DNA of 64,000 bases from Haplodiscus bocki (lineage: Eukaryota), in assembly GCA_965655095.1 (NCBI GenBank), contig OZ296652.1, forward strand, positions 70,804,001 through 70,868,000, read 5' to 3'. A model generated the notes under the pieces. That model made no database searches, was not told the origin of the DNA, and worked only from the letters and a program-made list of their open reading frames with translations. A program made the position numbers and the translations under genes. Shown here one piece after another: positions 18,871-54,599 of the stretch (position 1 is its first letter; every line of letters starts with the position of its first letter).

Positions 18871-19552
18871 GGTTTTGTTGTTGTTGGATATTTTCGACAG
18901 CGTCGAAAGGATTCTTTCCCACTACTGAAATCAGAACTTCTTCCTCGTATTTCTGCAGCTACCACAATCACAGAAGATTATCCAGCTGCAGACATCAATC
19001 TCACAAAAACCAGAGCTGACGAATTTCCACATAATTGGCAGAATTCTTTCCTTGAGGCCCGTTGTCACCGAGAAATCTATAAATTCATGTAGATTGTTGA
19101 TCAATCGACAGTTTCTGAGAGTGATTTCGCCTTTTGTTTTTTCAGTTCTCGTAGTAGGAAGTTTGAAAATTTCAGTACCTCTACCCAAGTTTTCATTTTT
19201 CTGAAGTTGGAGTTGGTTTAACTCATTTGACAATTTGACAAGTAACAAAATGTCGCTCAGTTGCAGGAACATAGGTAATGGAAGCAGATTGAGCAAACGG
19301 AGTTGACTTGTAGAACTAGAGATTTTGGAGCCAGTTATCTATAACACTACCTTTTCTGGAACTTCTCCAGGCATTTCATGTCCGCTCTTGATAATCCAGC
19401 ACAGAAGAATCCGTCAGTCAAAATGGGCAATAGCAACGACTTGTAGAGTCCCGGTTTACCGTTGGCTTGAAAATTATAGGAAAGGTTCCTTTTGAGCATA
19501 TAGAAGAAACTGTTAGCTTTCTTCATTCTTGCAGAACTGTGGGCATGCCAAC
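18871..19552 (-). mobile_element. CR1/L2-group LINE family B copy 1, 3' portion (split by the LTR element)
   Basis: SWHAHSSARMKKAN...LYKSLLLPIL, LNLLPLPMFLQLSDILLL...CDCGSC and a short (CAA)n tail; highly similar to 54600-55075. Confidence 0.85.
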
Positions 19553-19988
19553 TGTAACATTCCATGTTCCGAAGAAAGTTACGATGACAGCTGAAGCAAG
19601 AAACTTTTCTCAGAAAGAGCCCCAAGACTTTAATCTTAAGTAAAACTGACAACTTAATTGGGCGCCAGAGAGATGACTGAGAAAGATACTAATGTCAAAT
19701 TTCCTGTTGACTGTTCATGAGAAACTAATGAACTTTAAACTTTTGTATATAAATACGAGATAATCTTTAACTTTAATCACTACAGAAATCGGACTGTCAA
19801 TAATAAAGTTGACTGCTGAAACTCACTATTTTGGCCCTAGTTGCTGAGAACTTCGTTGGAATTCAGTTGGTGAACCCGCATCTAGTTGAACATAAAACTT
19901 GAAAGTAGATTCAACAATCTATAACCCACTCTCGCCTTAGGAGAAATTTGAAACTCTAAAACTATACAGGAAAGTTGCAAACGTTAGG
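19553..19988 (+). repeat. 5' LTR (436 bp)
   Basis: Starts TGTAAC right after the TSD; TATATAAA at 19746 and AATAAA at 19802; 19816-19988 matches 33288-33460 (about 17 mismatches in 173 bp by eye). Confidence 0.9.
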
Positions 19989-20004
19989 TGGTGACAGCTC
20001 GTGG
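19989..20004 (+). promoter_or_regulatory. Primer binding site (TGGTGACAGCTCGTGG), possibly tRNA-Leu
   Basis: TGG-starting motif immediately after the LTR end; its complement ...AGCTGTCACCA resembles a tRNA 3' end. The tRNA identity is inference. Confidence 0.7.
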
Positions 20005-20594
20005 ACGAAGATTTCCAACGTTGCAAACAACAGCAGCCCAACAGAAGACAATTGGATTCGTTGATCTGAAACAGAACAGACGAGCAGTACGATCTTGTCA
20101 AACAGCGAAAAAGAAGACAAAAAGGGCTACTCTTAGGAGACAGGGTACAAGACGAACGCTTTTAAAACCCCAGACGACTCCCTACACGAAAAACAGTGGC
20201 CGAACAGTGGAGTGACCGGAACAGAGGAACTTTTGGGATGTTTTGAGTGACATCATTTTTCTCTCACAGAAACTACAATCAGTTAAAACGAAGAAACTTC
20301 TAGCAGCCTGTAAGTCCAACAATTTTTTTAGGATCTTAAGCAGTGTTAAAATTCATACGCGCTCAAATTGTTCTGAAAAAACTGAATTCGTCAATTGCCT
20401 ATCATCATTCATCAAGGAGCGCACGCAGTGATTTGATATTGAAGCAGTAGTTGTTATTTTCTCTCACCACTCATTGCTTCTTAAAAATTATTTTATGGCA
20501 TCCCAAAATTCTGTATTTCTGCCGATATCAACTAAGCGGAACGCATTCGGTAGGTTATTGAAACGAACCGCCAAATTTGGAGAAAATCAGAACT

Positions 20595-21850
20595 ATGGCA
20601 GCAGCATCGCTGATATCGATTCAAAAATTTGGAGGTTCTTCAACAGAAAAATGGACAGACTTTGAGTCCTTTTTCCGTAGCTTAGCTGATGTGTCAAATA
20701 TAAACGAAGACAGAGAAGTAAACTACTTCAAGTTGCAACTGCAACATGCAGCTCTTCAATTTTTTCACACACTGGACAACGAAACCAGAAATGATCTGGA
20801 ACTGACATTGACAGCATTGAAAGATTACTTTTGTAATCCGAATTTGAAAGAAATCCATCATATCAACTTGGAAAACCTAAAATTCAACAATAAAATAGAT
20901 TCACCAGAAAGATTTGTGGTAAAATTGCAAAACCTAGCAATGAAAGCATATCCGCCACCAGGGGATTTGCCTGTTCAGCCACTCAATGAAGATGTAGCGA
21001 ATAATTAAGAGAGTTGATAAAGAAAACAGAGAAAATGAGAATAGGGGAAACTTTGCGACAAGGGAAAGAGACAGACATGTCATTAGACTATTCAAGAAAG
21101 CAATGCCAAAATTTATCAGACTTAAACTCCTAAAAGAACCAGAAATTGCCCCAATCCAAAGTCAATGCACGAAAACAAGACAAAAATTGGTTTTGAGAGA
21201 ACTTTGTACCGTAGATGACTGGTCGCGAGATGAATTAAATGAAATGAATAATGATTATACGGACAAATTCTTGAACGTTATAACAAAAGTGTCAGAAAAA
21301 TCAAACCTCATTAGAAACGAAACTGAATGCCCTCACTGAAAAATTTAACACCCAACAATCTCCAAACATTTCAGGATCAAACTACCATAAAATTATCAAA
21401 ACCAGAGAAAGAGAGGTTCTTATCGATGTAGATAGAACAAAAGGGGAACTAATTATAGAAAAAAGAGTCTTGGAAGATATGGAAAAAATTATAGAGGAAA
21501 TAATCGGGGGAGATATAACTATAGACCAAAATATCGTGGACAGAATTCAAGTAACTTTAAGAGTGATTACCACAGCTACAATAACTACAACAACAATAGT
21601 TTCAGACAAAATGCATCAAACGATGAAACAACAGTAAATTCTGGAAATTATGACGAACACAATGAAACCACCGCATTTTCTCAAAACGTTTGCTACACTT
21701 GTGGTTATCCAAACCATACAGCACGCAATTGCGAAGTAAAAGGAAGAAATAGCTCAAGAGGGGGTCAAACTGCTTTCAACTCGCAACCGAAAAACGCGCA
21801 GAGCCACACACATCAGCCAGTCCATTTAACTTACAAAACTCAGATTTGTA
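20595..21850 (+). pseudogene. gag: gag (capsid + CCHC nucleocapsid)
   Basis: IQKFGGSSTEKWTDFESFF...LQHAALQFFHTL retrotransposon-gag pattern; Gly/Arg/Asn-rich stretch; zinc knuckle CYTCGYPNHTARNC (CX2CX4HX4C) at 21691-21732. Confidence 0.88.
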
Positions 21851-24800
21851 TGACGCTGATTTTAAAAAATTATGTTCTGCAAATGAAGTCTCAGTTCTAG
21901 TTTTTGATCTTATTTTCACACATTCATTGACAGGTCAGTCAATGTCAGATGAAACACAATCAAACGCACTTATTTTTCTTATTTCAGCTGAAGGAGAAAA
22001 TTTGATGTATATTCCATTGAAATTTGAAAACGATGTTCGCAGAAGAGGAATCACTGATACTGGAGCATGTGCAAATGCAATGCCAACAGACATTTGTGAA
22101 AAATTAAAAACACAATGCCCAAACTACGTTTCAGAAATACAACGAGCATCACTTTTAAATGTGAAAGAAGCTTCAAGACGTACAGTAAAAGCCTTAGCAC
22201 AAGTGGATGTCAACTTGAAAACTAATGAGCACCAATTCGACGACGTTTTTCTACTTTTACCTTCGATGAACAGTGTTGTGCTAGGCAACCCATTTTTCAA
22301 AAAATATAATATCGAGATAAATCCTGGAGAAAACATACTCATACTCTCAGATATGAATTATCATTTAAAAGAAATCAAAACTCCTAGTCAAAGCAGGAGG
22401 GAAATTCCAAGAACGAAATATCCTCTCCGTCTACTACAAAAAACTGTAATCAGACCTCAGCAACCAGAAAGTCTCTATTCAAAAATAGGTGTTCCAAAGA
22501 AACTGGAAAGTCATACATGAATTGTAATTCGAGACGAACAATTTGAAGAAAGTACAGCCCCTAAAGTTTTCGTTAGTCGTTTTAAAAGTTGAAGAAGACA
22601 ACAATATATCAATAATTGCTTTTAATTTGAACAAACATATTGTGACACTTGCAGAAAACAAACAAATTGCCGTATTCCAATTCCTTTCACCCCAGGAGGA
22701 AGAAGAATTGATTGAAATTGGTCCAGATCTCTTAGCCTTGGACACAATGAAAGATGGATGAACTTTCAAAAGCGTAAATCAAGTTTTGAGTACAGCAAAA
22801 GTATATGGCAAAAATCAACATAAACATCCACCACCGGACTACAACCAGATTTGGTTTCCAACGCCGGCAACCTGTCGAAACCCTGAAAACTTGCTTTGTC
22901 TACAGAGAAAAATTTATGATAACATTACAGAGTTACAAAAACGAGGTACTTTAGATCCTCAAAAGAATTCAATAGACCAAGAACTTTTTATAAAACCAAA
23001 TTGATTGGTCACGGTCTACCCTGATAGCAACACAGGTTCAGGAAATGCAGGAAATAATCGTTGAATATTATGATATTTTGGCAAAACATAGATTTGATGT
23101 TGGCTATAATGCTGAATTGAAAGTCAATAAATCCAGAGCATGATTTACCCGTTTATGTTCAAAGTCCACCAACAATTCATTTGAGAGACGAAATCATAGT
23201 TGAACTTGCCTTAATGCAATATTATGGTATCGTGACACTCCTACCAATTTCAAGATATAGTAGTCCCATAATTACTCAACGCAGGTCATCAGGGAAACTG
23301 AGAATTTTGATTGATCTTAGACGAGTTAATCAAATCCATTGGAATGATTACAAAAACAATACTTTTCCGATAACAAACATGACTGACGCGGTTCGTCAAT
23401 TCGCAAGAAAGACTTTGTTTACAAAGTTAGAGTGCTCTCAAGTTTATCACTGTGTATAAATGGCAGACCAATTATCAATGAAATTACTTTCGTTCAACTT
23501 TGTCTGACGAACATACGCCTACACGAGATTAGCACAAGGATTAAACAAATCAGTGACAGGGTCTAGGTCATTTGTCAGATCTTTTCTAGATTCCTGTCTG
23601 GCAGCAAACATATGTACACAATTTGTGGACGATATCGGTCCCGGAGTGGAGACAATTGAACAAATGATTCACACATTGAGACAAAACTCTGATTGCCTTA
23701 AGAAGTCAGGATTAAGATTCACCTCCCAGAAATGCGAATCTAGAAAATCTTTGATGAATTTTCTTGGCAACACGATAATATATGAAGGACTTAAGCTAGA
23801 GAAAGAAAAAATATAAAAGTTTCTGAATAAAAGTTCCAGCCACTGTGAAAGGAGTGAAAAGACTAGTTGGTTTCACCCTATTCTTTCGATCATTTCTTCC
23901 TAGTATAGCACAAAACTTGATGCCATGGTATAAACTCCTCAGAAAAGATGTAGGATTCCTTCTTGCAGGATGAACTACCGAAACGTTTTGACATCATAAA
24001 GAAAGATTTGCTCAAAGCAACTCAAACTACTTTACGTTTAGCAAAACCAAGACAAAAATATGTATATCTGTGTGACTTAAGATATTATAATAGCGGATTT
24101 GTCTTAATGATTGAAGACTACCTAGAACAAGAAGACGGAAAGAAAAAACAAGCGTACGCACCTGTAACCTACGGATCACAGTTAGTTAATGCAAGTCAGT
24201 TAAAAATGTCTATGTATTGCAAAGAACTTCTAACTCTCCCTTTTGCGCCAGAGTTTTTCTCTCACTTCATTTGGGGAGCTGAAAAACCAGTAATTGTCTC
24301 AACAGACAACAAAAGATTGACGAGTGTTTTCCAATGAAAGTGACTTCATCCAGAATTGTGGAAGTTCGTGGACAGAGTCATTGCCTACAATATAGTTCTT
24401 GCACATAATCCTGGTGGAGCAAATGCAGCAGCAGATTTTCGATCATGAATGCAAACCGATCCAACTCAAAGCTTGGAAGTACAACTTCACGACTCCATCC
24501 CAATCAACGAAATTGAGATAGACATGGAAGCGAAAACACCTGAGTCATCGATCATACCAATAAAACTTGATCAACTAGAACAAGTAGGCTCTCAGCCTCA
24601 CGTTTTATCAGAAGATATAATAAGCTTCATAAGCTCAAGTCATGTCCTACAAAACCTAAACCCTCAATTGAATGATCTTTCGGCATCTGTATCAAAAGAT
24701 ACCATTTCAGAAGTTTGCCTCAAAAAACGTGCACCAGAAATCAATTCAATTCAACAAAATGATCCTTTGAACCAATTTAAAAGTTCAATTCCAAACTCTA

Positions 24801-27530
24801 AACCACTGAAAATACAAGAGAAGCAGAAAAAATATCCAGTGATTAGAAAAGAAAAGGACTGGATTGAAAATGGATGTACTGATGACCTAACTTATGCTTC
24901 TTTCGAACTGATAAAGTGTCATAAACATTTGATGAGACTACAAATACACAAAGGGATTTTAATGCGACATTTTTTTGACAATATTGGAAAAAAATCACAC
25001 TCAAAAGTTTTTGTACCGAAACATTTGAGAAAAGAAGTCTCTTACAGAATACATAATTCTCCCACAGGAAGACATCTTGGTATTGGCAGAACAGCGAAAG
25101 AACTTCGCAAATTATTCTATTTTCCTGGATTTTCAGTATAATTGACTGACTACATCAAGAAGTCTCTTTCTTGCTCGACTCTCAAAAGAGTCACCAAAAA
25201 ACAAATACACCCACCACTTCAACCAATTTCATCCGAACAACTTTTGCCGGGTGACTTGATGAAAATAGACCTATTTGGACCATTCCAATCACCCGTTCAC
25301 AAGTATGTGCTCTCAAGATTAGATGTTTTCTCCAAATATCTTTTCGCAGTTTCTTTAACACCTGCACATGCAGGTACAGTTGCAAAAGCTTTAATTCCGA
25401 GATTTTTTCAACACAGTTACATTCCTACCATAATCCTATCTGACTTAGGTATCAGTTTTGTTGCAGAAGTAGTTCATGGGTTATCAAAACTTCTTGAAAT
25501 ACGACTCTAACATGTTTCATTGAAGCACCCTCAAACAATCGGAGTTGTTGAAAGATCACATGCAGAATTGAAACGAATTTTGAAGCTCAACACTGATGAA
25601 AAGTGGACAACGTGGTATCCATATGTTGACGTAGCCACCTTTATCCATTACACGTCGTACCATTCATCAATTGGCTGTACTCCAAGCTCACTGTTCCATG
25701 GACGTGAACTCAATAAACCAATTGATCTACGTTTTCGATGACATGCATTAGCTCATAAAGAAAAATTGTCTGACTACTTAGTCGATTTGCAAGGTTCATT
25801 ACTGGAACAACTTTCACATACAAAACTGAGACTATTGGATGCGTATCACAAATATCGTACTTATTATGACTAAAAAGCAGCTGCAAAACCTTTGATGCAA
25901 CATCAATATGGTTTATTGTTGAATCCAACTCCACTTACACGAAGTGATTTTGCCGCAAAGTCAACTACCATTTGGCTTTCTTTGTACAGAGTAGAATAAA
26001 TCTTAACAAAATCTAAATATTTAAAAAAAAAAGTTGGTACTCCGTACACACAGTGTGTTCATCGAATCCGTTTGCGACTTATTACACGTAATTATCAGGT
26101 TCAGCACATCCAATTAATTATGGATGACTTCCGACCCAACCCTAGTTTAGGAAAATACAGGTCGGAGGAAGAAATGTTCGATGACGCTCTGGAGGACTTA
26201 CTACGAGAAGGTAAAATTTATGACCCTAATATTGACAAACCGTTTTTGCAGAAAAACATTGAGGTAGAAGATGTCATTGCAGGTGCAGCAGTTGTTCCAG
26301 CCGCACCTAGAGAAGAAGTACACCTCGAAGCACAAAATGCAGTGCGAGAGGTGCACCAATACCCGCCACTACAAACCGCACCTGAACCAGCTCCAATGGA
26401 AGGAGTTGAAAATTAGTTATTTCCAGAGCCTCTTGAACCAACGGCTCCAGTCCAGGTACACTTTGAGAGTCCCGAGCCAGCTGTGTCTCCTAAACCAAAC
26501 TCAAATCAAGAAAAATCATTGACTAGAACAGAAATGTCTGATACAAAAGCAAAAACTATACCATCTCGGATACGGATCAGTAGCAGTGCACAATCAACCG
26601 CTGCTATTTCGCAGAGAATTCGGTTTGATCAATATGAATATGATAGCGGAATTTCGTCGCGACAAGACTTAACGAAAACGTGTTATTATGCATATCTTGA
26701 GCAACAAGCTAAGACTCCACCGTCAGTGGACACAAAAAGAACTATGTTACGGAACAACGCATCTACTACGCGACAAAAACTAGTAAATTCAACACCCTCA
26801 GCTCAAAATTTAACGCAATTACCGGACAAAAAGATTCCGAAAAACCGTTATCCAGTTCTATCGAATAGAAGTCAACCGCCATCCTCTTCTGATGTCCATT
26901 CGCAAAACTTTCAGGTAAACCAAATTTCTAATGACACTGAAAGTATTTTACTACCACCAAATCTTGAAAATATACAAAGAGATCTGTTCAAAAACCCTAA
27001 TACTAATTTTGGACATTGCGTCTTCTCTGATTTAGTAATGGCAGCAGGAACAACTAAACATTCTTAAGATTGTTCCCTGGTTCGAACGACATTCGACAAA
27101 GAAAATTGTTTTCACCGCCAGGTTCACTTATAGCACATTTTTCTCACCAACGACAGAACTGGATATATAACTGAGTGACAAAACAGCACGGCAATTTGAA
27201 GCCTACTTACCATAACTTACATAAAAACCTATGTAGCACGAAAAGTCACTTGTTAGACCACGGAATAACAGAAATTAGCTTACCGCAAAATGGGTGTGGA
27301 TCAGACGAACCGACTGGAAAAAAGTACTGCTTGACATCATCCACAAATTTGGACACAGTGAAGTTTGTGTAAAACCCTTTTTACGAAAATGGCACAGCAA
27401 TCCATGGAATGCAAATCTGATAAATGCTGAAGAGTACGATAAAGACGAAGAAACAAATAGAAGATTGTTCCATATGTGCACGACTCGTAAGTTAGCTTTT
27501 GAAGGGTTACTGCAAAGTCCGCCTCCTTGA
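21846..27530 (+). pseudogene. pol: pol polyprotein PR-RT-RNase H-IN plus C-terminal linker and macrodomain
   Basis: Protease ITDTGA...VLGNPF; RT YSSPI...LRILIDLRRVN and FVDD; RNase H YLCD...TDNK; integrase H...GRHLG...CSTL, IDLFGPF, ILSDLG, VVERSH. ORFs starting 23963, 24449, 25142, 25520, 26072 and 26483 share one frame, broken only by point stops. Confidence 0.92.
26972..27375 (+). pseudogene. TARG1/OARD1 (Poa1p-like) macrodomain at the end of pol
   Basis: IQRDLFKNPNTNFGHCVFSDLVMAAGTTKH/FLRLFP...WIYN*VTKQHGNLKPTYHNLHKNLCSTKSHLLDHGITEISLPQNGCGSD/RTDWKKV matches the family pattern GDLF..LAHC.S.D..MGAG..F...IY.LITK....KPTY..L..SL...K.H....G...L.MP.IGCGLD.L.W..V. Confidence 0.88.
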
Positions 27531-27737
27531 TAAACCAAATAGGAGTGACATACTGAACTCTGAACTGTCACCTAAAGATTGACATATATTTGCTTAGATT
27601 CTTATCAATTCAGTGGCGCCAGCAGTCTGGCAAAGTAGCTAATTAAAGTTGTTATCAGCAGTCAATCAAACAAACAACTATTTCACATTTGAATTTAACT
27701 AACGCTCAAAATGAGCTGCAAAAATTAATAATCTATA

Positions 27738-28554
27738 ATGGCCATTCGCTCATCGAGTTTTGTTTTGTGAAATCTTCAATAGCATCACCATCAAACAAAC
27801 TGATCGAGAGTTTTTGGAGCCTCCAAGACTTGCGTTGTATACTCAGCGTCATCAAAACCAAATCTTGATCCATGAAGAAGTGGAAATTGTCCCTCGCTCC
27901 TTTGAATGGAGAGAACTGATAGCCTCTGCAAGTCAATTTGCTGATAATGACCAGTTAGAACAAGTTAGGCAGCGGCTCGTCAAAATGGACCAACAACAGC
28001 AACGCAATGTGTTCTTCACTGTCTCGTAAAGTGACACGTGACCTTACCTTTATCAACATAACCTTTAAAAATTCAATATTTCATTAAACAGGAAACATTT
28101 CCATATTAAAGTCGGATATTCTCTTCAATTTTACGATTCTGCACACCAAAACCACTCTCAGAAGATTCAGCGACTCCATGGACCTCCCAACAACGATGAA
28201 CAACTTTTCTTGGAAACTTTTTCTCAAGGAGAAAGTGTGTGACACGTACGAATACTAGAGAGTCCATGATATTTGGACCCCTTTCCAAGATCCCCCACTG
28301 ATTATCACAATCAGCTACTGGCAAGGCAACACCCTGCTCCTGGACGATCTTTATCTCTATCCCGACACGATTGAATGGAACTCCCTGCTTGAAACCGAGC
28401 AATATTGACCGCTGGAGAATCTAGAAGCGTCACCTTAGTGGTTTGGATAGAAGATATGGGACCAGGAAGCCGTGAATACCCAATGTTTCAACAAGTCTTG
28501 GTAAATATTAACCAATTTCACGGAAAAACAAACTCAATGTTTATTTGGACATAA
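27738..28554 (+). pseudogene. Accessory ORF of unknown function (~270 codons, decayed)
   Basis: ATG at 27738, an early frameshift into frame 27760, then protein-like reading to TAA 28552 with several scattered stops, mostly TGA. Confidence 0.5.
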
Positions 28555-29055
28555 TTGTTATTCAGGAAGAAATGTTCTTGATGAATTGGGCTACGTTTCT
28601 TTTTTCCTGTTTCTCCTCTCAACTTTTTTGGAATTGATGAAATATAGGTTCAACTAAAGACTTCTACGTCAAAACTCGAACCACAAACAGCTGGAAATTT
28701 TTGAAAAAAAACTGTCTTTGATAGAATCGTCAAATAGTAACCACAGCGTATTCAGTTCTTTGGTTTTGTATATTATTGACAAACAGGACCATCAAAATTG
28801 ATGCTGTAATTTTTTTAGTCTCATTGATCACTTTTTTACCTTTTTTTCAATTTTGAGATCGAAAATCAAAAATTCGCCGCAATACAATTATGGCCTAGAT
28901 TTCTGCTTGCTCACTTAAGCCCACGTTTGTATGCTCAACGTTGACTAAACCAAACGCTCCCCCTTGAACTTCATGAAAAGTCAGCACGGTTGGAAATTTT
29001 TTTTTTCCAACTATGTTTTTTCAACTTCTTGGAAGAAATTCCAATTTCGCCCATA

Positions 29056-30347
29056 TTACGATTGTACCGCAGGAAGTTTCCGTTCAAACCCAGGTATTCT
29101 TCCCAAAATTACAGTTCTTTTACATTGAGCGAGACCAATTTCTAATTTGTAAGTCTTACAAAGTAATTTTGTTTTTCCACAGCAGCCTCCCAGTTGGCCA
29201 CTTGGGCTAAAAACAAACCTCATATACCACAGAAAAAGAACTATTGTTCTTTCTGAAGATAAAATCAACTCCGTACTTTGTATTTTAGCAGCTTTTTGAT
29301 TATATTTTGCCCTGACACGAGATGGGAAAAGCAATCTTCGTTTTCGCATCGAGACTTTTACATCCCTTGCTAGAATTGAGGAGGCAGATCTTCCATCGTC
29401 ATACTAGAAGCAGTTTAAGTGTTCGAACAGGGCTGTTTTAGTCTTTTTCAAGGTGCTTAAACTCCACAGAGCTTGCTTCTTTTATTATTTTTCCAGCATC
29501 ACGTTCCTCCTCTCAACTCCCAGCCCAGTGGAGTAATAGTTTAGAACTTGCTTGCGCCGTTTTAAATCACTTTCATCCTTGCCCTCAAATCCAACCACAA
29601 GCGCAGCCCCATTTCCCATAGTCACAACAGTATGAGCACATAATGCAGGCTGAGTCTATAGGGCATCATTATATGTTATGAAAAACTTCACGATATTTTT
29701 CATCAACTTAGAAGCCAGTTTGGATAAACAGTCCGTAATAGCGGTCCATGAGGTAAATAACGACTCCAAACAACGAGTTGCTCTCTCACGTTCAGCAATT
29801 AGCATTAGATATTTCCCAACTGGAACACTGGTAATACTGCCGACTCCGCCTGTCTCAATATGGCCAGCAGTGAACCAAGGGCCAAAAAAGAAAATACCAT
29901 CTAATTTTGTCAACGTGAGAGCATTAGTCATCTTATATTCCACTAATCCGTCCAAATTAAAAGAGCATGTGGAAGAATTTTCAGTAAATTTTGTATCGAA
30001 ACTCGATATAGGCCCAGACACACGATCTTGGCCACGTAATTTCCAAAACTTACGATGATTTAAAATCAACCTTACTCCAGTTGATACACTTGATACATTT
30101 TCAACAAACCCTGCGTGCATGGTGAATAACGATTGATTCCTCATGACAACCCGTTCTTTCGCCCAATTCTGTCAACTCCTAAACTAAGGCCACAAAATTT
30201 CACTTCAGAAGTAAAGTCGTCCCAAGTACTACCTTTGGATCCATCAATAGCTGTCACTGCTTGCCAGCCCAGTTCAATCAATTTTTCTTCATTCAAATTA
30301 TCTTCCCAATTGATGTTGAAATGCGCTTCATCACATCGCGTTTCCAT
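29056..30347 (-). pseudogene. Antisense JmjC-like Fe(II)/2-oxoglutarate oxygenase carried by the LTR element
   Basis: ATG 30347 (METRCDEAHF...), frameshift ~30150, then FFFGPWFTAGHIETGGVGSITSVPVGKYLMLIA; reading through the TAG at 29656 gives TQPALCAHTVVTMGNGAALVVGFE. This is an H-x-E...H triad with the two His 76 aa apart. The same frame continues into MRKRRLLF (ORF 29056-29349). Confidence 0.75.
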
Positions 30348-30451
30348 ATTAAACGATCTTTGAAAAAAAAACAAAATTATAGCAGCTAACCAGTCCTGAA
30401 GTTGCAAACGTAAGGTGTTTTAATCACACTCAGTACTCTGAAAACAAGCAA

Positions 30452-30862
30452 CTATTGAATTCTTTCCAGAGTACCCTTCACTTTATCTCTAACAGCAAAA
30501 GCAAACCACTTAGCATAACAGTAAACTACATTCAAAGTAACAACTATAAGCAACGCTGCTGGAGAATCTAAACAACGTATCTGTTTTATACCCCTCAACA
30601 CTACAGTTAAGTTAATCTGAGCATTTTTTGCCGTCACAGCATGTTTTCGGCGACACAGCCGCATAATGCAATAGAACATCTTCACTCCCAACAGAACGAA
30701 TAGCAACACCCAAGACAAATCGGGTCGCACCTCTTCTGGCACATTGATGGGTTGTCCTTGCAGACACACATCCATTAATTCGGGGATGCATTGCTGGCCT
30801 ACGCAAGTCTTATCTGGACAGCAGTGGATATCAACCCCACCAACATTACTAGTAAAACACAT
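30452..30862 (-). CDS. Small antisense Cys-rich membrane protein (unknown)
   Basis: ATG 30862: MCFTSNVGGVDIHCCPDKTCVGQQCIPELMDVC...; hydrophobic LSWVLLFVLLGVKMFYCIM followed by basic RLCRRKH; open to 30452. Confidence 0.45.
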   Translation of the reverse strand: MCFTSNVGGVDIHCCPDKTCVGQQCIPELMDVCLQGQPINVPEEVRPDLSWVLLFVLLGVKMFYCIMRLCRRKHAVTAKNAQINLTVVLRGIKQIRCLDSPAALLIVVTLNVVYCYAKWFAFAVRDKVKGTLERIQ

Positions 30863-31000
30863 TTTGCTAACTCTCTGAAAACCTCGGAAAAATTGGAAAA
30901 AGCTGACTTTCCTGGGATGGCAACTGAAAAAATGTAGAAATACAACGCCAAAACTTACAAAGTACCTCAAAATCAAAAAACGCAAAAACAAAACAAAAAA

Positions 31001-33160
31001 ATGCTGGATCCGCAGGATTCCACCTATACTTTTCTCTTCAATGAATTTTTTTCGGTCGCCTCGAAAACTTTTTCGGTTTCAGTGCTATCGACATGCATTG
31101 CCAGAATTCTCACGGATCAATTGAAATGGACTTGGAAAACCGTTCCAGAACAAGCACAAGGCGCAATACTTGAAACGGCATCATCTTTTACTGGCTGAAA
31201 AATTCATCAACGTTGACTTTCTAGTCCCATTTCCAAAATTTGAGCATAACTTACGCGCCGAAATAGGCGCCTACATTGAAAAACCTGGAAAGCTCTGGGC
31301 TTCTCCTAGCTGGCAGTGTCACTTGGATTACTCGACAAATTTTCAGAAAAACGACTCAACTATTGATGTTGGTTGGCTTCTTCACCAAGTTGAAAAAGAA
31401 GTTAACCTTGCAGAGCAAGAGTTTGACGTTCCTCGCAACTATACTTCATCTTTTTTAAACAATGAAGCAACTGAAGTGCAGGATATTCATCGACCACCGA
31501 GCAATGATGGCAGTTGCGTCGGTTGGATTATTTCGACTCGGAATCGCGCTTGGAGTAGGATCCTACAAAATTAAAGGAATTTTTGGTTCTTGCCATGATA
31601 AATCCAAAAGCAATGCAGAAAATATTCAAAAACTCGCTGACTTCATAGAAACCTTAACAAAAGATGTTTTTAAATTACGAAACAAAGTAAACGATAATTT
31701 TTTTATTGTAGCGTCCGAACTTGCTGCAAATAACTCCTTTGAAAAGGAAATGTTTGAAGTTCAAAACCGTGACCGGCAAATCATTGAAGACCACTTTAAA
31801 GTATGTCAAATCAATATTCACTTCTTACGAGATTGTGATCAGTTACTTTTCTCTCGCCAGCAGATCAATCCCAATTATGACACTAATTCTTCATTGCTTG
31901 CCATAAGACGTTATCGAGGCGCAATTTACACCTACCGTAATAATATGATGAACTCTTTTCGTACAATTCTGAGCAATTATTTGCCAAGGTCGCTTGTTCC
32001 TCGACAATCGCTCCTAACGATTCTAGAGAATGTTACAGCGGAAGAAATTCGCTCCAATGTCAGACTTTCTGTAGCAATTCCAATGGATGAAATAGTTTCC
32101 TATTACGAGTCACGAATTTTACGAGATGTCGTTACTGTAGACCAAGGTCTAGTCATGCGTATTGCCATTCCTTGAGCATCAAAACAAACTGCATTTACAG
32201 TTTTTCGTTCGTAGTGGAACCTGATGTGGCAATCAAATGGAAATTAGAAGCGCTATATTTGGCGATATGGGAAGATAACATGGAAACAGCATATCTGACA
32301 GAATATGGTCTCTCACGATGTATCGGATCCTCACGGTATCAATTATGCCTCGACATGATTGCAACAGAAACAGGACATGGATCTTGTAAAGCAACACTTT
32401 TATTCTAAGGCAGCGTGGAAGCATTACAGATATGCGATACGGAACCAATTGCACTTCCAGCGACGAAAAAAGCTGAAAACTTGGATTTGGTGTTTGGCTC
32501 ATAACGTCTGCAACCACAACCTATACTCTCTTTGAATCCAATACAGCCTCAACTATTTCATCAGAAACAATTAAACACCCTGGATGCCAAATTGGTATTA
32601 TCACATTGGAATGCGGAAAGCAGTTAGTAGGTCCACACATCAAAATTAGGTCGGACCTGAGTACTTGCGAATAGATTCCAGCAACTAAAATTAAGGTGAA
32701 GTTCCCAGATCAGTTGAAACATTTTCGAGGTGATCTTCCAGAAGTTGATGATGTGCCTTATTTTTCGGCAAAAAAGGCAGGTGGAAATGCAACGCTGAAA
32801 GAAGTCCGAGAAAATTTACTTGACAGCCCTAAAATGCGAGACCCGGAAAAACATTTGGGAAGAGCAGGTCCGTAAAATTCAAAAATAACTCAACTGCGTT
32901 CAACTCTTTCAAAAGACTTCGATTCTCATTTGTCTATCAAGCCCTCCCTTTTAATGTGCCTCCGATCATTTTTGGGATCAATGGTTTTAAATATGCTTTT
33001 TGTCTGCATTTATCATTGGTATAAACACAAGCATCGCGAAAAACCTCTATTTTTCCCGAAAAAAATCCCTTGTCCCAGGACGAGAAGAAAAAATCAAGCG
33101 CACAGTTTTTCTATCGACTTTTGGCAGATGCACGAGAAACCACTTTGGACATTGAATTAA
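31001..33160 (+). pseudogene. env: env-like class I fusion glycoprotein (baculovirus F/errantivirus Env-like)
   Basis: Fusion-peptide-like AMMAVASVGLFRLGIALG after a damaged basic site; heptad region AENIQKLADFIETLTKDVFKLRNKV; VVTVDQGLVMRIAIP strand; Cys-rich region (SRCIGSSRYQLC...SCKATL); C-terminal TM FLGSMVLNMLFVCIY then HWYKHK; N-glycosylation sequons NDS and NYT. Confidence 0.8.
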
Positions 33161-33274
33161 ATCTAACAGGCCACGGTATGGAACGAACTGCTTCGAAAAT
33201 TGGTGTTGTAAGTTCTGGGAGCAGCAAGTTCACAACAGTTGAGACAATCCCATGTCCTTCTTACGATACCGTTC

Positions 33275-33284
33275 AACGGAGAGG
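33275..33284 (+). promoter_or_regulatory. Polypurine tract
   Basis: AACGGAGAGG immediately before the TGT that starts the 3' LTR. Confidence 0.7.
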
Positions 33285-33460
33285 TGTCTGAAACTCACTA
33301 CTTTGGCCTTAGCTGCTGAGAACTTAGTTGGAATTCACTCGTTGAACTCGCATCCAATAGAACATAAAACTTGAAAGTAGATTCAACAATCTATAACCCA
33401 CTCTCGCCTTAAGAGAAATTTGAAACTCTAAAACTAGACAAGAGAGTTGCAAACGTTCGA
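33285..33460 (+). repeat. 3' LTR (176 bp, internally deleted)
   Basis: TGT joined directly to the sequence matching 19816-19988; followed by the CCAAC TSD. Confidence 0.9.
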
Positions 33461-35285
33461 CCAACTTAGGATATTATTCACGTAAACTCCCAGGTCCTTT
33501 ATGAATTTTGTCGAATTGAGAGCAAAACGTAGAAAACTTGGAGTCATCACCTCTGAAGGTTTCCTTGAGACATTTGTCCATTGCCAGATACCTTTTGTTA
33601 TCTGTTGCCCAGTTGTCAGCTGCATCTAGATCAGCCTGTACTTTCAGCCAGTTGTTCTTTTTGCACAAAATTTTTAAATCATCCGCAAGCAGATGTGAGT
33701 CACTGAATTTTGAAGCAGCCAGCAGATCGTTCATGAAAATGCAAAACATAAGTGGTCCCACCGCAGACCCCTGAGCTACGCCGCTTTTAACAAAGAGAAT
33801 TTGCGAGCTTGTAATTTCCACATGGAAAATTTGCTTACGTTGATCAAGGTAATCAGATATCAGCTCAAGAATGCAACCCTCAATGCCGATTCGACTGAGT
33901 TTTTTCGAAAGTTCCAAATAGGGTAACTTGTCAGAAGGCTTTGACAAATCGGTGTAGAAGGCGATGATTTCACTTGATGACTCTTTGTCCAGAATATCTT
34001 GGATTCATTTCAGAGACAAGCATATGGATTGGAACTGAAAATTGTTTCACGAAAGCATGCTGACGCTTTGTTGGGAATTTGGTATAATGGTCATACAGGG
34101 ACTGGTAAGTGCAATTCTCGCAGACTTTGACGACAATGTATGAAAGCGATACTGGTCGGTACTTTTTCAAGTGGCGTCTGTCTCCTTAAAAATCGGGGAT
34201 ACAGCCGCAATTTTCCAAGTGACCATATTTTGCAGACATTTTATGTTTTTTGGAACTTCATGGAGGATTTCTGCCCTGGCAGCAGAATAAAATTGGTGCA
34301 AGTGCGTCAGGTCCTCGCGCTTTTCGAATACCTAAGGTAGCCAGAATATTGGAGAAATTCTTTTTCGAGATGCTGAAGTTCGTTAAAAAAATGTTCTTCC
34401 GGTTCAATGTCTTTGATGTTAAGAGGTTCTATTGCTGTGAAAACCGAATGCAAAAAATGATTCTACATGTTGACTTTTTCGACTGTTTTTCTGCTGGAAA
34501 CTTCGTCCTGGATGAGAACTTGTGGCACTTTACTTGTCTTGTTGTGGTTTCTGAGATATTTGGAATTGAAATGTGTGTTCCTTTGTTCCAAGAGGTTTTG
34601 TGGGTAAGCAAAGGTATCACTCTCCGCGCATTCAGTCATAAATAATCTCTGCTTTTCCATAACTCGCTTTCTGCGTGGGGTTGGTTTTCTCAAGTAACAG
34701 TTGCTCTTTCGTCTCAAGTCTTCTCAAAAGGTTCGAAGTACTTGATCAAATCCACGGAGGAAGAATTTGTCGGTGGCGGGTTCTCCTAGGCACACAAATT
34801 CCTGTAAACTCTCCGAAATAATGGTACATATCTTATTGCATTCGGTCGATGTTTGAGTAGCAAGTTGCCTCAAAAGGTTTGATAATCATAATCTCATTTA
34901 CTTGGGTATAGTCTGCATTGCCAAAGCTTCGGAAGATCTCGATAATTGGTTTTGCATCAACGTTCGGACACTCTACCAAAAGTGAAACATCTCCATGGTC
35001 TGTGCAGTCGTATACTTTGGTCACGTGTTTGTTCGGTTCAGCATTGACTAAACAATTGCGTTGGAGAGCGATGTCGAGTAGGCTGTCTGCACGACGTTCA
35101 AAATCTACAGCTTGTTCCAAAAGATTTTCTTCGAAAAGGTCAACAATTTCCTGCTCGAACTCGTCGCTACTCATAAGAGTTCCCCAGTCATTCTTCGGCA
35201 AGTTTACATCACCGCATATGGGGAGTTGTTTGGATTTAGAAAAGTTACTGTAACTTCAAAGTCTTTCGTGTATCTGTACCTACTG
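33461..35285 (-). mobile_element. CR1/L2-group LINE family B copy 1, 5' portion (EN-RT), 5'-truncated
   Basis: ICGDVN, YRPVSL, FYTDLSKPSDK, SGVAQGSAVGPLMFCIFMNDL, LLADDLKI, IKDLGVYVNNILSW; the last peptide continues as SWHAHSSARMKK at 19552 across the insertion. Confidence 0.9.
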
Positions 35286-36086
35286 TCTTGCCAACAGGCG
35301 CTAAAGTATTGTCGAATCGACCAAACCTCTTCTCTAATAATTGTTATGCGAGAAAGCTACAACCTCTGTTTTGGCGACAAGTAACGTAGCCTTCATTCTG
35401 CCATCAGAAGTAGCGGTAAAAGTAACGACACGAGCAGCGTGTGCTTTTTCTGAAGCATTGTTGAGGTGGATATCAATGGAGTTGGAGAATCCGTCCTTTG
35501 CAACAAAGCTTCACAATTGCAGTGCTCAATTGAGTGAATTTTGATGGCTGTGACATCTGAAAAATATACGTCATATTTATCTTTATGGAAAAATAGATGT
35601 AATTTCTATATACGAGTAATTAAACTTTCGTTGAATGTTAAATTACTTTGTTGTTTATGTATGAGTTATGATTTAGCTGAAGTACCTGAAGAGGAATTTG
35701 GAGCAATCAACAACCTAACTAAACGAGTACTCACAAACAGAAACGATTGTCTACAAACAGAGCACCCTTTTACTCAGAGGATACTTCCGACTAAAGAAAT
35801 GGATTCTACTTGAAAATTTAAACTTTAATAGTTGTTTACATACATAATCATCGTACATAAATATTTTATTGAAGTATCTGAAAGAAATCAGAAAACAACA
35901 GATTGAGAACAGGAAAAACTGGATAGATACAAGTTCTTAATTGTCTTAATTCAGTCTTGAATATACCGGCAGAAGGGTTTGCTAGTCTACTAATTTAATT
36001 TTGAAAGAAGGTAGAAATTCTCAACCGTTGATTTTTGTTTCTTATTGGTTAATGATTCAGATTTGTATGTCACTAATCAGTATCCA

Positions 36087-38705
36087 ATGAGTTGTGACAG
36101 CGAAGACAACTTGGTCCTTGGCGTCGTGGGAGACTTGTGTGAAGACTCGGAGATACTACAAGCCGCTCGAATTCTTGGGTTGAAGTACAAATTAATTCCT
36201 GATGTCAGAGAGCATCATTGTGAAGAAGATGTTTACGTTGTTCCATCTTTCGATTCTACCCAGTACAAAACCCTTCGTCACTTGAAAATTAACAAAATTA
36301 TAGGACCACCGGTTCTTCTGAGCAATGCAGCGACAAACCGTTTGGGTTTCGAGCCCCCAAGCAAACCCGTGTATTGTTTGGCAATGGATGGTGCAGTTGT
36401 ATGTGTTTCTGGCATCTACGAAGAATCAGAATGGAATCAACTGATGTCTTATGCTATTAAAATGGGTGCCCGTGTTAGATCTGAGGTTACTCTACAATGT
36501 ACGCATTTAGTTTCAGCTACAACTTATTCTGAAAAATATCGACTTGCAGTGAACTTTGGTTGTGAAATTTTATCCACGGAGTGGATTTATCAGTCCTGGG
36601 CCCAAAAAGATGAGCATTTGTTCTCCGCAACAGACAAAAGTTTTGTCACAAAATACAAACTGGCACCGTTTTACTATTGTAAATTAGCTATTTACGGGTT
36701 CGTAAAACAAGAAGCTGATCACATGCAAGAAATTGCTGTTGAGAACGGGGCGCAAATTGTTGACCCTGATGCTGCCGATTGTGAAGTTTTGGTGATAGAT
36801 GATGCAAGGATCAGTGCCCTTCCTGAAAACTTGGTCAGCGATAAGGCCAGCATCGCATTTGTTCGCGCGGAGTGGTTTTGGGTTAGTGTACAAATGCAAG
36901 TTTTTGCACGACCAGAGCAGTTTCCTTACATTGATAAAGTTGGCACCCCGTTGCTGCAAAAAGCCAAAACACCCCGTTCTGAGGGAGTTAATAATTCCAA
37001 TTCAAAGAAGACAAAGCGAAGGAGACTCCAAGATAATCTGACGTTGTTAGCTCAAGACAATGCCTCGCCAGTTTCTTCTATGGTTGCAAATTTTGAGGAA
37101 GCAAACGCTGGTTCTATAATAATTGATTCTCCTGATTGCAGCTCTGAAAAGTGTGATAAAAAGGCGGTCCCTATTACTCCGAAAAGTTTTTACAAAAACG
37201 ATGATACAATTGAGACATCAACACCAGATAAATTCTTAGTACCCAAAACTAAGCGACATGAAATTGTAATGGAACTATATCAAACGGAAACAAACTACTT
37301 GACTATTTTGCAAACAATCATCAAGGAATTCAAAGAGCAATTGGAATCGGAAGAAGCTGTGGGAAACTCTCTTATTGATCCTGAGAAACGAAAAATTATT
37401 TTTGATCGAATTCCAAATTTGTATGCTGTACACAGCAAAATTCAATCAAAACTGTTTTCCTCGGTTACTAACTGGAAAGAAGATATTTCGATTGGAAAAA
37501 TTTTCTTAGATGCAGCGGATGATTTACAGAAAACTTACCCCCCGTTTGTTAATTTTTTCGAAATTGCGAAAGAAACGCTTGAAGAATGCGATCGCACAAA
37601 GCCTCGATTTCATGCTTTTTTGAAAGTGCGAGCCACGAAACCTGAGTGTGGTAGACAAACCTTAAGTGACCTTTTCATTCGGCCCGTTCAGAGGTTGCCG
37701 AGTATTTTACTGCTCATGACAGATTTGTTGAAAAAGACTGACTCGGCTCATTGTGATCACAGCCCGTTAGAAGAGGCTTTGGAAAAACTAAAAAGAGTGA
37801 CTTCACACATAAACGAAGACAAGCGCAAAACTGAAAGTAGATTGGAGATGCTCAATATAGCGACTACCATTGAAAATATCCCAGCTACAATCATATCTTC
37901 CCATCGCCAGTTGATCATAAGTGTGGATGCTACTGAAGTAACTGATCAAATAACTTATCGACAAGAACAACTGTGTCTGTTTCTATTCTCTGATTGTTTA
38001 TTGGTGGCAAAGAAACGGCATAGAGCTTTGAAAAGTCCAGCTACTAAAACACCCCAACAGAAAAGTTACAAATACCAGGCTGTCATCAATCTTGGACAGG
38101 TTAAACGAGTAGTTGATGTCGAGTGCAATACAAATTTGCCTCCTTCAGTTTTTGGTGTAGTTTTCAAACCACAAAGTGAAACATGTGAGACACTATTTGC
38201 GTTTAGTCTTTCAGAAGAATACTGCAAAAGCGATTTTATCAAAAAGTTGGCAGAACAAACTAGCATCACTCAAATGAGGACTGATTCCGAAAATTTAATA
38301 ACAATAATGCCTGCTAGTGAATTGAATCTTGATGGCGTAGACGCAGTCAATACTTCTCTTACAAAAGCTATTTCAAAAGTGGCCAAGAAAACATCAATGA
38401 AGGTTTCACAAGCCTTGACAGGTAGTGCTGGGAAATCTGCTCCGGGGAAAGAAAACTATTGCCAAACGAGTATTCTTCAGAAGGGGTCTTCAGATATGTC
38501 TGTTGATGGTGTGTCGACCACTCCCATTAGGAGCAGCAGCAGAGGTTTCATGTTCAGCAAAAAGTTGATGAGCACTCTGGATTTAACAAGTGTTCCCAAT
38601 TCTTCTAGAGAGGATAAAATGGAATACAGAAAACGGACACTGCCCGACCGATCCTCGACAATGGCTGAAAGTTCTGTGTCGTTGTCTAGAAATAACTTTC
38701 GCTGA
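36087..38705 (+). CDS. ECT2: Protein ECT2/Pebble RhoGEF (BRCT repeats - DH - PH), single open frame of 872 aa from the first ATG
   Basis: IIGPPVL; BRCT MGARVRSEVTLQCTHLV...EWIYQSW; second BRCT ...VRAEWFWVSVQM; NLS KKTKRRR; DH RHEIVMELYQTETNY...YPPFVNFFE...KPECGRQTLSDLFIRPVQRLPSILLL...HINEDKRKTE; PH LFLFSDCLLVAKKR; several S/T-P sites. Confidence 0.96.
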   Translation: MSCDSEDNLVLGVVGDLCEDSEILQAARILGLKYKLIPDVREHHCEEDVYVVPSFDSTQYKTLRHLKINKIIGPPVLLSNAATNRLGFEPPSKPVYCLAMDGAVVCVSGIYEESEWNQLMSYAIKMGARVRSEVTLQCTHLVSATTYSEKYRLAVNFGCEILSTEWIYQSWAQKDEHLFSATDKSFVTKYKLAPFYYCKLAIYGFVKQEADHMQEIAVENGAQIVDPDAADCEVLVIDDARISALPENLVSDKASIAFVRAEWFWVSVQMQVFARPEQFPYIDKVGTPLLQKAKTPRSEGVNNSNSKKTKRRRLQDNLTLLAQDNASPVSSMVANFEEANAGSIIIDSPDCSSEKCDKKAVPITPKSFYKNDDTIETSTPDKFLVPKTKRHEIVMELYQTETNYLTILQTIIKEFKEQLESEEAVGNSLIDPEKRKIIFDRIPNLYAVHSKIQSKLFSSVTNWKEDISIGKIFLDAADDLQKTYPPFVNFFEIAKETLEECDRTKPRFHAFLKVRATKPECGRQTLSDLFIRPVQRLPSILLLMTDLLKKTDSAHCDHSPLEEALEKLKRVTSHINEDKRKTESRLEMLNIATTIENIPATIISSHRQLIISVDATEVTDQITYRQEQLCLFLFSDCLLVAKKRHRALKSPATKTPQQKSYKYQAVINLGQVKRVVDVECNTNLPPSVFGVVFKPQSETCETLFAFSLSEEYCKSDFIKKLAEQTSITQMRTDSENLITIMPASELNLDGVDAVNTSLTKAISKVAKKTSMKVSQALTGSAGKSAPGKENYCQTSILQKGSSDMSVDGVSTTPIRSSSRGFMFSKKLMSTLDLTSVPNSSREDKMEYRKRTLPDRSSTMAESSVSLSRNNFR

Positions 38706-46447: not shown

Positions 46448-47599
46448 CAAAATTCCCAAAACTTAACGAGCGTTTAGTAAATATATAATTGAGCTAGTGG
46501 GATGAAATTTGGATAGGTACTGGAAATTGGGGCTCTTCTTCATTTTTCGAATAAATTTGAGCCAATCGAAACCAAACGCACCCCTTTTCCCAAAAACGCC
46601 ACTTTTCGAACAATAAAGCGAAAATCGCCTTGAAATTGTTGTAAACTCAGCACTTAAAGCGCTCCATAAATGGAGATTTCACAACTGTTAACCACTCTTT
46701 TAATGTTGATTCGTTTGAAAAACCCCTAAGTCATACGAAAATAATCATCTTTCTCGGACACTTGAGAAGCTGAAAAGATACCGTTCTTTTTGAAAAAAAC
46801 AGGTCATGGCTTTCAAGCCTTTTCCCATTTGGGGAGCTGTCGAGCAAAAAGGATTTCCACCCAATTGTTGTTGTTTTCGAGGAAGTTTTTTATTAAAATG
46901 TTTCGATTCGTCGAGTTTGTTATTTTTGTTAAAAAAAATCACAGATTGAACGAAAGAGGCCATCAAAATAAATTTCTCAGATCGACAGATTTTCGGGAAA
47001 GAATTTTCGTTGTTTTCGGTTGTGTCATTTTTTCCTTAAGTTTTGTATCACCGCCGTTTATGAAAAGATTGGCAAAGGTGGTTTTTAAGCCCGATGCAAA
47101 ACTGTCCCCAGGAACTCTTGTGTCGCGCATTTTATTCTACGTCAGAGTTCTCAAAAGTTTTCGTTTTAGAAAACTGTCTTTCCGGAAGTTTCCTGGTTTA
47201 CACGCGCACAAGCAAGTGTTAAACCACAGGCTTTGGCTTTTTCCTGATCCGTTCGCAACTCGCTTTGTGCCTACATTCAATTCTTGCTTAGATTTTGTTC
47301 TTGCGCTCTCGCTCTCTTGCAGAAATTTTTTCATGCGGTCTTGCGCATTTGTGAAATTGTGTTCATGTAGCCTCGTCTCCGGCATGCGCGCTTGTTTTAC
47401 ATTTCTGAACAATTAACTGAGGTAATTGAATTTCTGTTTGTTTTATTCAGTTATTTGTTGTACCGTAGTGCCTTCAGAAGTCAGTTTCACTTGTTCGTTC
47501 CAATCACTATATTCCTGTTGGTGAAAGTTTCCTGAAACCCAGCTTCATCTCTGTGTGTCAACAAATGTTTTCCTGAAAGTTAGCAACGTTTAGAAGAGT

Positions 47600-53447: not shown

Positions 53448-54599
53448 TAATGAAATGAAGTCAAACATTACAGGACATGTAATGCACGTTCAAGGCAACG
53501 CCAGTCAAATGAGGCGAATATAACATCCCATTACCCGTAGTTAGCTGTGATTTTTGAGATACATTTTTGGTCTCTGAACAATTTCTCACCTATTTGATTT
53601 CTCGTTTTTCAGAACTTTTCGCTTTTCGATTGAACGAGAAGATGCCTGTGTGCTTGCAAGTGGCATATTAGCTGCTAATGACGTTTTTAAATGTCTCCTC
53701 AGAGTATTTAGCTCGATTATGTTGCTTCAAAGTCAGCTTCTTGCAAATTCATTTGGCAGCGACAATCTGAGAGCTTTTCTTAACTTCACACTTTTTTACC
53801 GTTTTAATTTCCTCTCAAATTATTGTGGAATATCGTTTTTTTTGTAATCAGCATTCATTTTTGAGTGAGAACTCAACAAAAAGTTTTTCAGCCTTTTCAA
53901 ATTTTCGACTGGAATAAAGCTATTGTCATGAAGTGTACAACGTTGACAGGAAATGGTGGATTCAACTAATGCAACTTTCCAGCCCATGTCAATAATTGTC
54001 TTCCACACGCTTCGAAAAAGTTGAATTTAACTATTTTTAGCTATCGTATAGCAAGTATGATTGTCACGTTAGTAATTTAGTAATAGCATTTTCAAAGTTG
54101 AGCAAGCTTCTGGATTTCAAATTAGAAACATAGTGGCCTTGCCTTTTGTTTGGCGAATTTTATTTGGCCTGCAAATTTGGCACAAAATTTCCGTAAATAT
54201 TGGAGTGGATCTTGAAGAGTTGGTAGAACGATTGGGACGCTTTAAAAGAACCGTATATTGCGTTGCAGTCTCTGAGAAGAGGTCTTTATTGGTATCTAAA
54301 ACGTCTACTTTCATTTTTCATAACACATTCATGAAATGGGAAGCCTTCACCAGCCTCATTACACTTGCACAAGGAAGTGTTATATCTCAGGCTTCTGATT
54401 CGTTTTTCCGATCTGTTCATAACTTACATTTGTGCCCACGGTTGATGTTGCCCAGTTTTTGTTCATGCGCTCTCGTATTCTTGTAAAAATTTGTTCATGC
54501 ACTCTTGCGAAGTTGCTAAAATTTATTCACGTGGCCTATTTTCCAGCGTACGCGCTTGTTTTAAAAATAAAACGAATTAATTGCTCTGGGCGTTACACT

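Follow-up and report, generated by a model that had tools for sequence, protein, structure and literature searches.

The window analysed here, a stretch of 64,000 nucleotides of Haplodiscus bocki DNA (contig OZ296652.1 of GCA_965655095.1, forward-strand positions 70,804,001 to 70,868,000), contains a degraded, env-bearing LTR retroelement of the Ty3/gypsy type, 13.9 kb in length and located on the plus strand at 19553-33460. The element is flanked by a perfect 5-bp target-site duplication (CCAAC, 19548-19552 and 33461-33465) and is nested in one copy of an RT-bearing repeat which is seen again at 54607-56854. Its 5' LTR (435 bp, 19553-19987) matches the LTRs of L005, a second genomic copy of the same element family, and of the related locus L004 over 410-439 bp, and the last 170 bp of it match the 3' LTR of the window at 91%. 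The 3' LTR (33288-33460) is a remnant of which only the last ~173 bp remain. Comparison with L005, which has about 590 bp more internal sequence plus the full LTR, shows that a deletion removed the end of the internal region and the first part of the LTR. The window also holds an uninterrupted 886-aa ECT2-like ORF at 36045-38705 with BRCT, RhoGEF and ECT2-PH domains, which matches human ECT2 in the PDB (E 7e-135) and is 37-39% identical to named vertebrate ECT2 proteins, closer relatives being found only in unnamed ENA and Logan contigs. No tRNA genes were found in the window.

All four genes of the element are broken. The gag gene (20601-21795, plus strand), located with the intact gag of the related locus L003 (35% identity), carries at least one frameshift and four stops, while pol (outer bounds 21978-27366, plus strand), located with the 1818-aa pol of L003 (48% identity), carries at least six frame changes and 14 stops. 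Pfam searches of the open pieces identify RVT_1, RT_RNaseH, Integrase_H2C2 and rve in that order along the plus strand, as also seen in relatives, and close pol relatives occur only in unnamed ENA assemblies. An env-like gene (31173-33067, plus strand), located with the 870-aa ORF of L003 (44% identity), has at least three frame changes and five stops and has lost its 3' end in the deletion. A profile of five such env-like ORFs from relatives gives weak but consistent hits to paramyxovirus F0 fusion glycoproteins (best E 0.002), and although no Pfam hit was obtained, all five have a furin-like site followed within a few residues by a hydrophobic segment and three have a C-terminal hydrophobic anchor. 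This is consistent with an env of the paramyxovirus-F type.

Between pol and the env-like gene lies a spacer (27367-31172) which carries, on the minus strand and hence antisense to the element, one gene of about 430 codons. It runs from an ATG at 30345-30347 to a TAA at 29056-29058 and is broken by one frameshift and four in-frame stops, natural intact relatives aligning to the window over 29284-30347 in two reading frames. This confirms the initial annotation, in which three open pieces were joined into a single antisense gene with an H-x-E...H triad. The His-x-Glu codons are intact at 29854-29862 (His 29860-29862, Glu 29854-29856) and the distal His codon at 29632-29634, 76 codons after the first His. 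Also intact are a Thr codon at 29869-29871, three residues before the first His, and a Lys codon at 29812-29814, 17 residues after it. Small ORFs flanking the gene (179 aa in the window; 100, 231 and 89 aa in relatives) are lineage-specific, and as that of the window is not open in its sister copy they are probably not genes.

In order to examine whether the antisense gene belongs to a family, its longest open piece (162 aa) was searched with phmmer against 1.84 billion representative proteins. This returned 65 relatives at E<=1e-3, 26 at E<=1e-10 and four at E<=1e-30, with E-values down to 3e-52, several of them being intact proteins of 346-394 aa; a word-indexed search with the family alignment added only one new member. 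None of the hits carries a name in any source. Nor does any sequence search significantly link the family to JmjC, as Pfam searches of the four open pieces of the window (E<=1) and of 10 long relatives (E<=0.1), an NCBIfam search of five relatives, a PDB search with the longest piece and a PDB search with the family profile all gave nothing for JmjC, and a scan of all 60 aligned members at E<=10 gave a single non-significant hit to Pfam JmjC (PF02373, E 0.11). The near residue-for-residue match to the KDM2/KDM7-type JmjC strand claimed in the initial annotation could thus not be reproduced at the sequence level, and by sequence criteria the family is unclassified.

AlphaFold2 models of two intact relatives only 23-24% identical to each other, P0024 (computed with a 60-sequence family alignment) and P0035 (from an element with long open gag, pol and env-like ORFs), have a pLDDT of 88.3 and a pTM of 0.82, and a pLDDT of 86.3 and a pTM of 0.81, respectively. 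Both show an N-terminal alpha/beta region, an eight-strand double-stranded beta-helix with a two-helix insert after the fourth strand, and a helical tail. Foldseek returned more than 350 PDB matches at E<=1e-3, and the top hits of both models are exclusively JmjC enzymes (E 2e-9 to 1e-6, probability 1.00): C. elegans and human KDM7A, PHF2, PHF8, TYW5, KDM2A and JMJD6 for P0024, and PHF8, PHF2, KDM7A, TYW5, KDM2A, JMJD5, FIH and JMJD6 for P0035. The TM-scores are, however, moderate (0.35-0.46). Among predicted viral structures the best named hits are cupin, JmjC and 2OG-oxygenase proteins of giant viruses and phages, together with polyproteins and replicases of plant RNA viruses.

Eighteen long members of the family share 17 invariant columns, which include Thr171, His174, Glu176, Lys191 and His250 (P0024 numbering). 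Across 60 members the Thr is retained in 57/60, the first His in 56/60, the Glu in 52/60 (with Asp in a further four), the Lys in 55/59 and the distal His in 37 of the 43 sequences which have a residue there, that is, in 86-95% of members. In the P0024 model, where the strands occupy residues 156-268, the first His ends strand II (169-174), the Lys lies on strand IV and the distal His begins strand VII (249-254). Judged from these strand positions, rather than from measured distances, the His-x-Glu and distal His probably correspond to the Fe(II) ligands of JmjC enzymes, and the Lys and Thr may represent their 2-oxoglutarate contacts. A basic patch near the C-terminus (at least four K/R in six residues), noted in the initial annotation as an NLS-like motif, is present in 12 of 16 long members.

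The gene is part of the element and not private to this copy. L005 is collinear with the window at 85-87% DNA identity over 19977-33288, straight through the gene, and in all 10 related genomic loci examined, from three ENA assemblies, the gene is antisense to, and just beyond, the integrase end of pol, while in nine of them an env-like ORF of 446-870 aa on the pol strand follows on its other side. Two of these loci, L003 and L009, show long open ORFs for gag (428 aa), pol (1818 and 1704 aa), the antisense gene (346 and 345 aa) and the third, env-like ORF (870 aa). Two further family members, P0024 and P0031, lie on short Logan contigs that hold only the gene and give no context. Between sub-lineages differing at 54-60 nucleotides the dN/dS of the gene is 0.27 and 0.23, close to the values for gag, integrase and env in the same or sister pairs (0.06-0.30), whereas it is about 1 or above between copies only 5-6 differences apart; the tandem copies of loci L001 and L002 are identical and hence uninformative. 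This is the usual picture for a gene selected while the element replicates and neutral after insertion.

The spacer with its gene is exchanged as a unit. The related loci L006 and L010 are 93-96% identical in DNA over gag-pol and over env, but share no DNA similarity over the entire pol-env spacer (about 2.9 kb, from about 120 bp past the pol stop to about 56 bp before the env ATG), and their antisense proteins are only 40% identical. The same pattern is seen between the window and L004, with gag-pol and env 81-83% identical and a spacer without DNA similarity that still encodes a family member (P0002, 50% identical). This fits a self-contained transcription unit, although the upstream regions of different lineages do not align and TATA-like and poly(A)-like hexamers are no more frequent than shuffles predict.

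Taken together, the segment is best explained, with moderate confidence, as a dead copy of an accessory gene belonging to a lineage of env-bearing Ty3/gypsy-type retroelements of animals. Its intact relatives most likely encode an active Fe(II)/2-oxoglutarate oxygenase of the JmjC type, a reading that can be held with considerable confidence although catalysis is inferred, and this enzyme is inferred to work in the nucleus. Being on the opposite strand the gene cannot be translated from the genomic RNA of the element, which suggests, in the absence of transcript evidence, that it is transcribed from the DNA copy by a promoter of its own in the roughly 500-1100 bp between its ATG and the env ATG. 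The most likely role, inferred and only tentatively assigned, is removal of repressive lysine methylation from chromatin, so that one expressed copy keeps the DNA copies of the family transcribable; as in the initial annotation, a demethylase or anti-silencing role remains an inference. It is possible, though less likely than not, that this lineage of retrovirus-like elements carries its own histone demethylase as a counter-defence against heterochromatin-based (piRNA/H3K9me-type) silencing, exchanged between element lineages like a cassette, which would be the first eraser of repressive chromatin marks encoded by a reverse-transcribing element.

The main alternative, less probable but not firmly separable from the above, is that the enzyme is a hydroxylase which modifies a host or element protein, or an RNA such as the tRNA primer. 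TYW5, JMJD6, JMJD5 and FIH are among the top 10-25 Foldseek hits of both models, with E-values within about 10- to 100-fold of those of the demethylases, and the protein resembles such JmjC-only hydroxylases in being small and lacking a histone-reader domain. On the other hand, the very best hits of both models are KDM7A, PHF8 and PHF2, and the conserved basic patch points to the nucleus, although several hydroxylases are nuclear too. A role without catalysis, as a binding or scaffolding factor built on a JmjC fold, has been argued for fission-yeast Epe1 (PMC7192584) but appears unlikely here, as all five residues expected for Fe(II) and 2-oxoglutarate binding are retained in 86-95% of members, across lineages only 25-40% identical overall, which a pure scaffold would not need.

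That the segment is an unrelated secondary insertion, or a fragment of a host gene, might be suggested by the lack of DNA similarity between the spacers of the window and L004, but is very improbable and not supported by the collinearity with L005, by the constant position and orientation in the 10 loci, or by a search for terminal repeats of a nested element around the gene, which yielded only short, chance-level repeats. The spacer of L004 encodes a family member and hence represents another version of the same unit. Chance open reading frames with a chance H-x-E...H pattern, for which nothing speaks beyond the absence of Pfam and PDB sequence hits, are refuted by the homologues, the confident folds and the dN/dS values.

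Mobile elements are known to counter silencing with proteins of their own, such as VANC in plant Mutator-like elements. No JmjC gene in an LTR retroelement was found in the literature searched, an absence which is not proof. The element fits the env-carrying Ty3/gypsy elements ('ancient errantiviruses') of metazoans (PMC13524379), with gag-pol encoding RT, RNase H and integrase, an env that is F-type in that survey, and many near-identical copies per genome, while a term search of the text of that survey revealed none of the terms 'antisense', 'opposite strand', 'demethylase', 'dioxygenase' or 'accessory'. LTR retrotransposons of bdelloid rotifers acquire third ORFs with enzymatic domains (PMC5408684), the listed ORF3 types being env, DEDDy, GDSL, CC and TM; no JmjC, cupin or dioxygenase term occurs in that paper and its one use of 'antisense' refers to small RNAs. 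The replacement of the antisense unit with its flanks between near-identical elements represents a modular style of evolution better known for env genes. TET/JBP dioxygenase genes carried by fungal DNA transposons and Helitrons (PMC12730594) likewise place a 2-oxoglutarate dioxygenase, thought to counter epigenetic silencing of its own family, on a mobile element, but belong to a different branch of the superfamily which acts on DNA bases, and none was found in retrotransposons by the authors of that work; no TET/JBP structure is among the listed top fold matches here and no Pfam hit was obtained. The JmjC-only hydroxylases TYW5, JMJD6, JMJD5 and FIH share a similar size and single-domain build, but are slightly weaker structural matches without a sequence-level relationship. 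The KDM7/PHF8/PHF2 and KDM2 group (PDB 3n9o, 3kv5, 3k3o, 8f8y, 2yu1), the nearest folds of which are histone lysine demethylases, provides the best structural matches of both models by a small margin and shares the barrel, the strand positions of His-x-Glu and His and probably that of the Lys, a helical insert between strands IV and V and a helical C-terminal region. However, the retroelement-encoded protein (about 350-390 aa) has no detectable sequence similarity to this group and lacks a PHD, CXXC, F-box or other recognisable reader domain in any long member. It is therefore regarded as a new, divergent family with a predicted JmjC fold, and not as a member of KDM2/7.

The whole pol-env spacer, together with the antisense gene that it carries, has been replaced between elements that are otherwise highly similar. 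This is seen for the related loci L006 (9148-12022) and L010 (8392-11378), which are otherwise 93-96% identical in DNA while the encoded proteins are only 40% identical, and for the window (26243-30872) compared with the related locus L004, where the corresponding values are 81-83% and 50%. L001 and L002 are two loci on one contig of the ENA assembly ERZ25071359, which contains at least five identical tandem units of 4.1 kb. Each unit holds the C-terminal part of integrase plus an intact antisense gene, next to one full pol, while no env-like ORF is seen there. This could represent a real amplification or an assembly effect.

Upstream of the antisense gene (window 30348-30680, minus strand) and in the matching upstream stretches of the related loci L003, L006 and L008 and of L005, the sister copy of the window's element, a single TATA-like hexamer is located 206-243 nt upstream of the ATG in three separate lineages. 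However, the regions do not align, and such hexamers are expected by chance in 37-69% of shuffles. A hydrophobic ORF of 179 aa (30452-30991, minus strand) is also situated just upstream of the antisense gene on the same strand, but as it is split over two frames in L005 and absent from other lineages, it is probably not a gene. Among the proteins matched, P0062, a very long protein of 2452 aa, has six weak matched stretches to residues 55-103 of the query (E 4.6e-4).

The LTR element lies inside the first of two copies (83-89% identical) of an RT-bearing repeat of about 2.2 kb, represented by 18875-19347 + 33533-35285, and 54607-56854 (-). Unexplained stretches of 205 bp (19348-19552) and 67 bp (33466-33532) separate the repeat from the target duplication of the element. 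Adjacent to the second copy of the RT-bearing repeat, a 200-bp direct repeat (47198-47399 and 54359-54563) is present at 75% identity. Throughout the window CpG depletion is only mild, with an observed/expected ratio of 0.81-0.88 in the element, the ECT2 ORF and the rest, which hints that heavy germline cytosine methylation is not the main silencing route of the host.

The window also contains an uninterrupted ECT2-like ORF of 886 aa (36045-38705, plus strand) with BRCT, RhoGEF and ECT2-PH domains. A single-exon ECT2 is unusual for an animal, and the ORF could be a retrocopy or could reflect an intron-poor host. It is 37-39% identical to vertebrate ECT2, while relatives at 64-86% occur only in unnamed ENA/Logan contigs. 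All proteins that are 38-96% identical to the pol of this lineage (P0199-P0305) originate from unnamed ENA metagenome assemblies, with one cluster encompassing more than 1,500 member sequences, and the hosts appear unrepresented among named genomes. The nearest named protein is that of a plant retrotransposon, at 26% identity.
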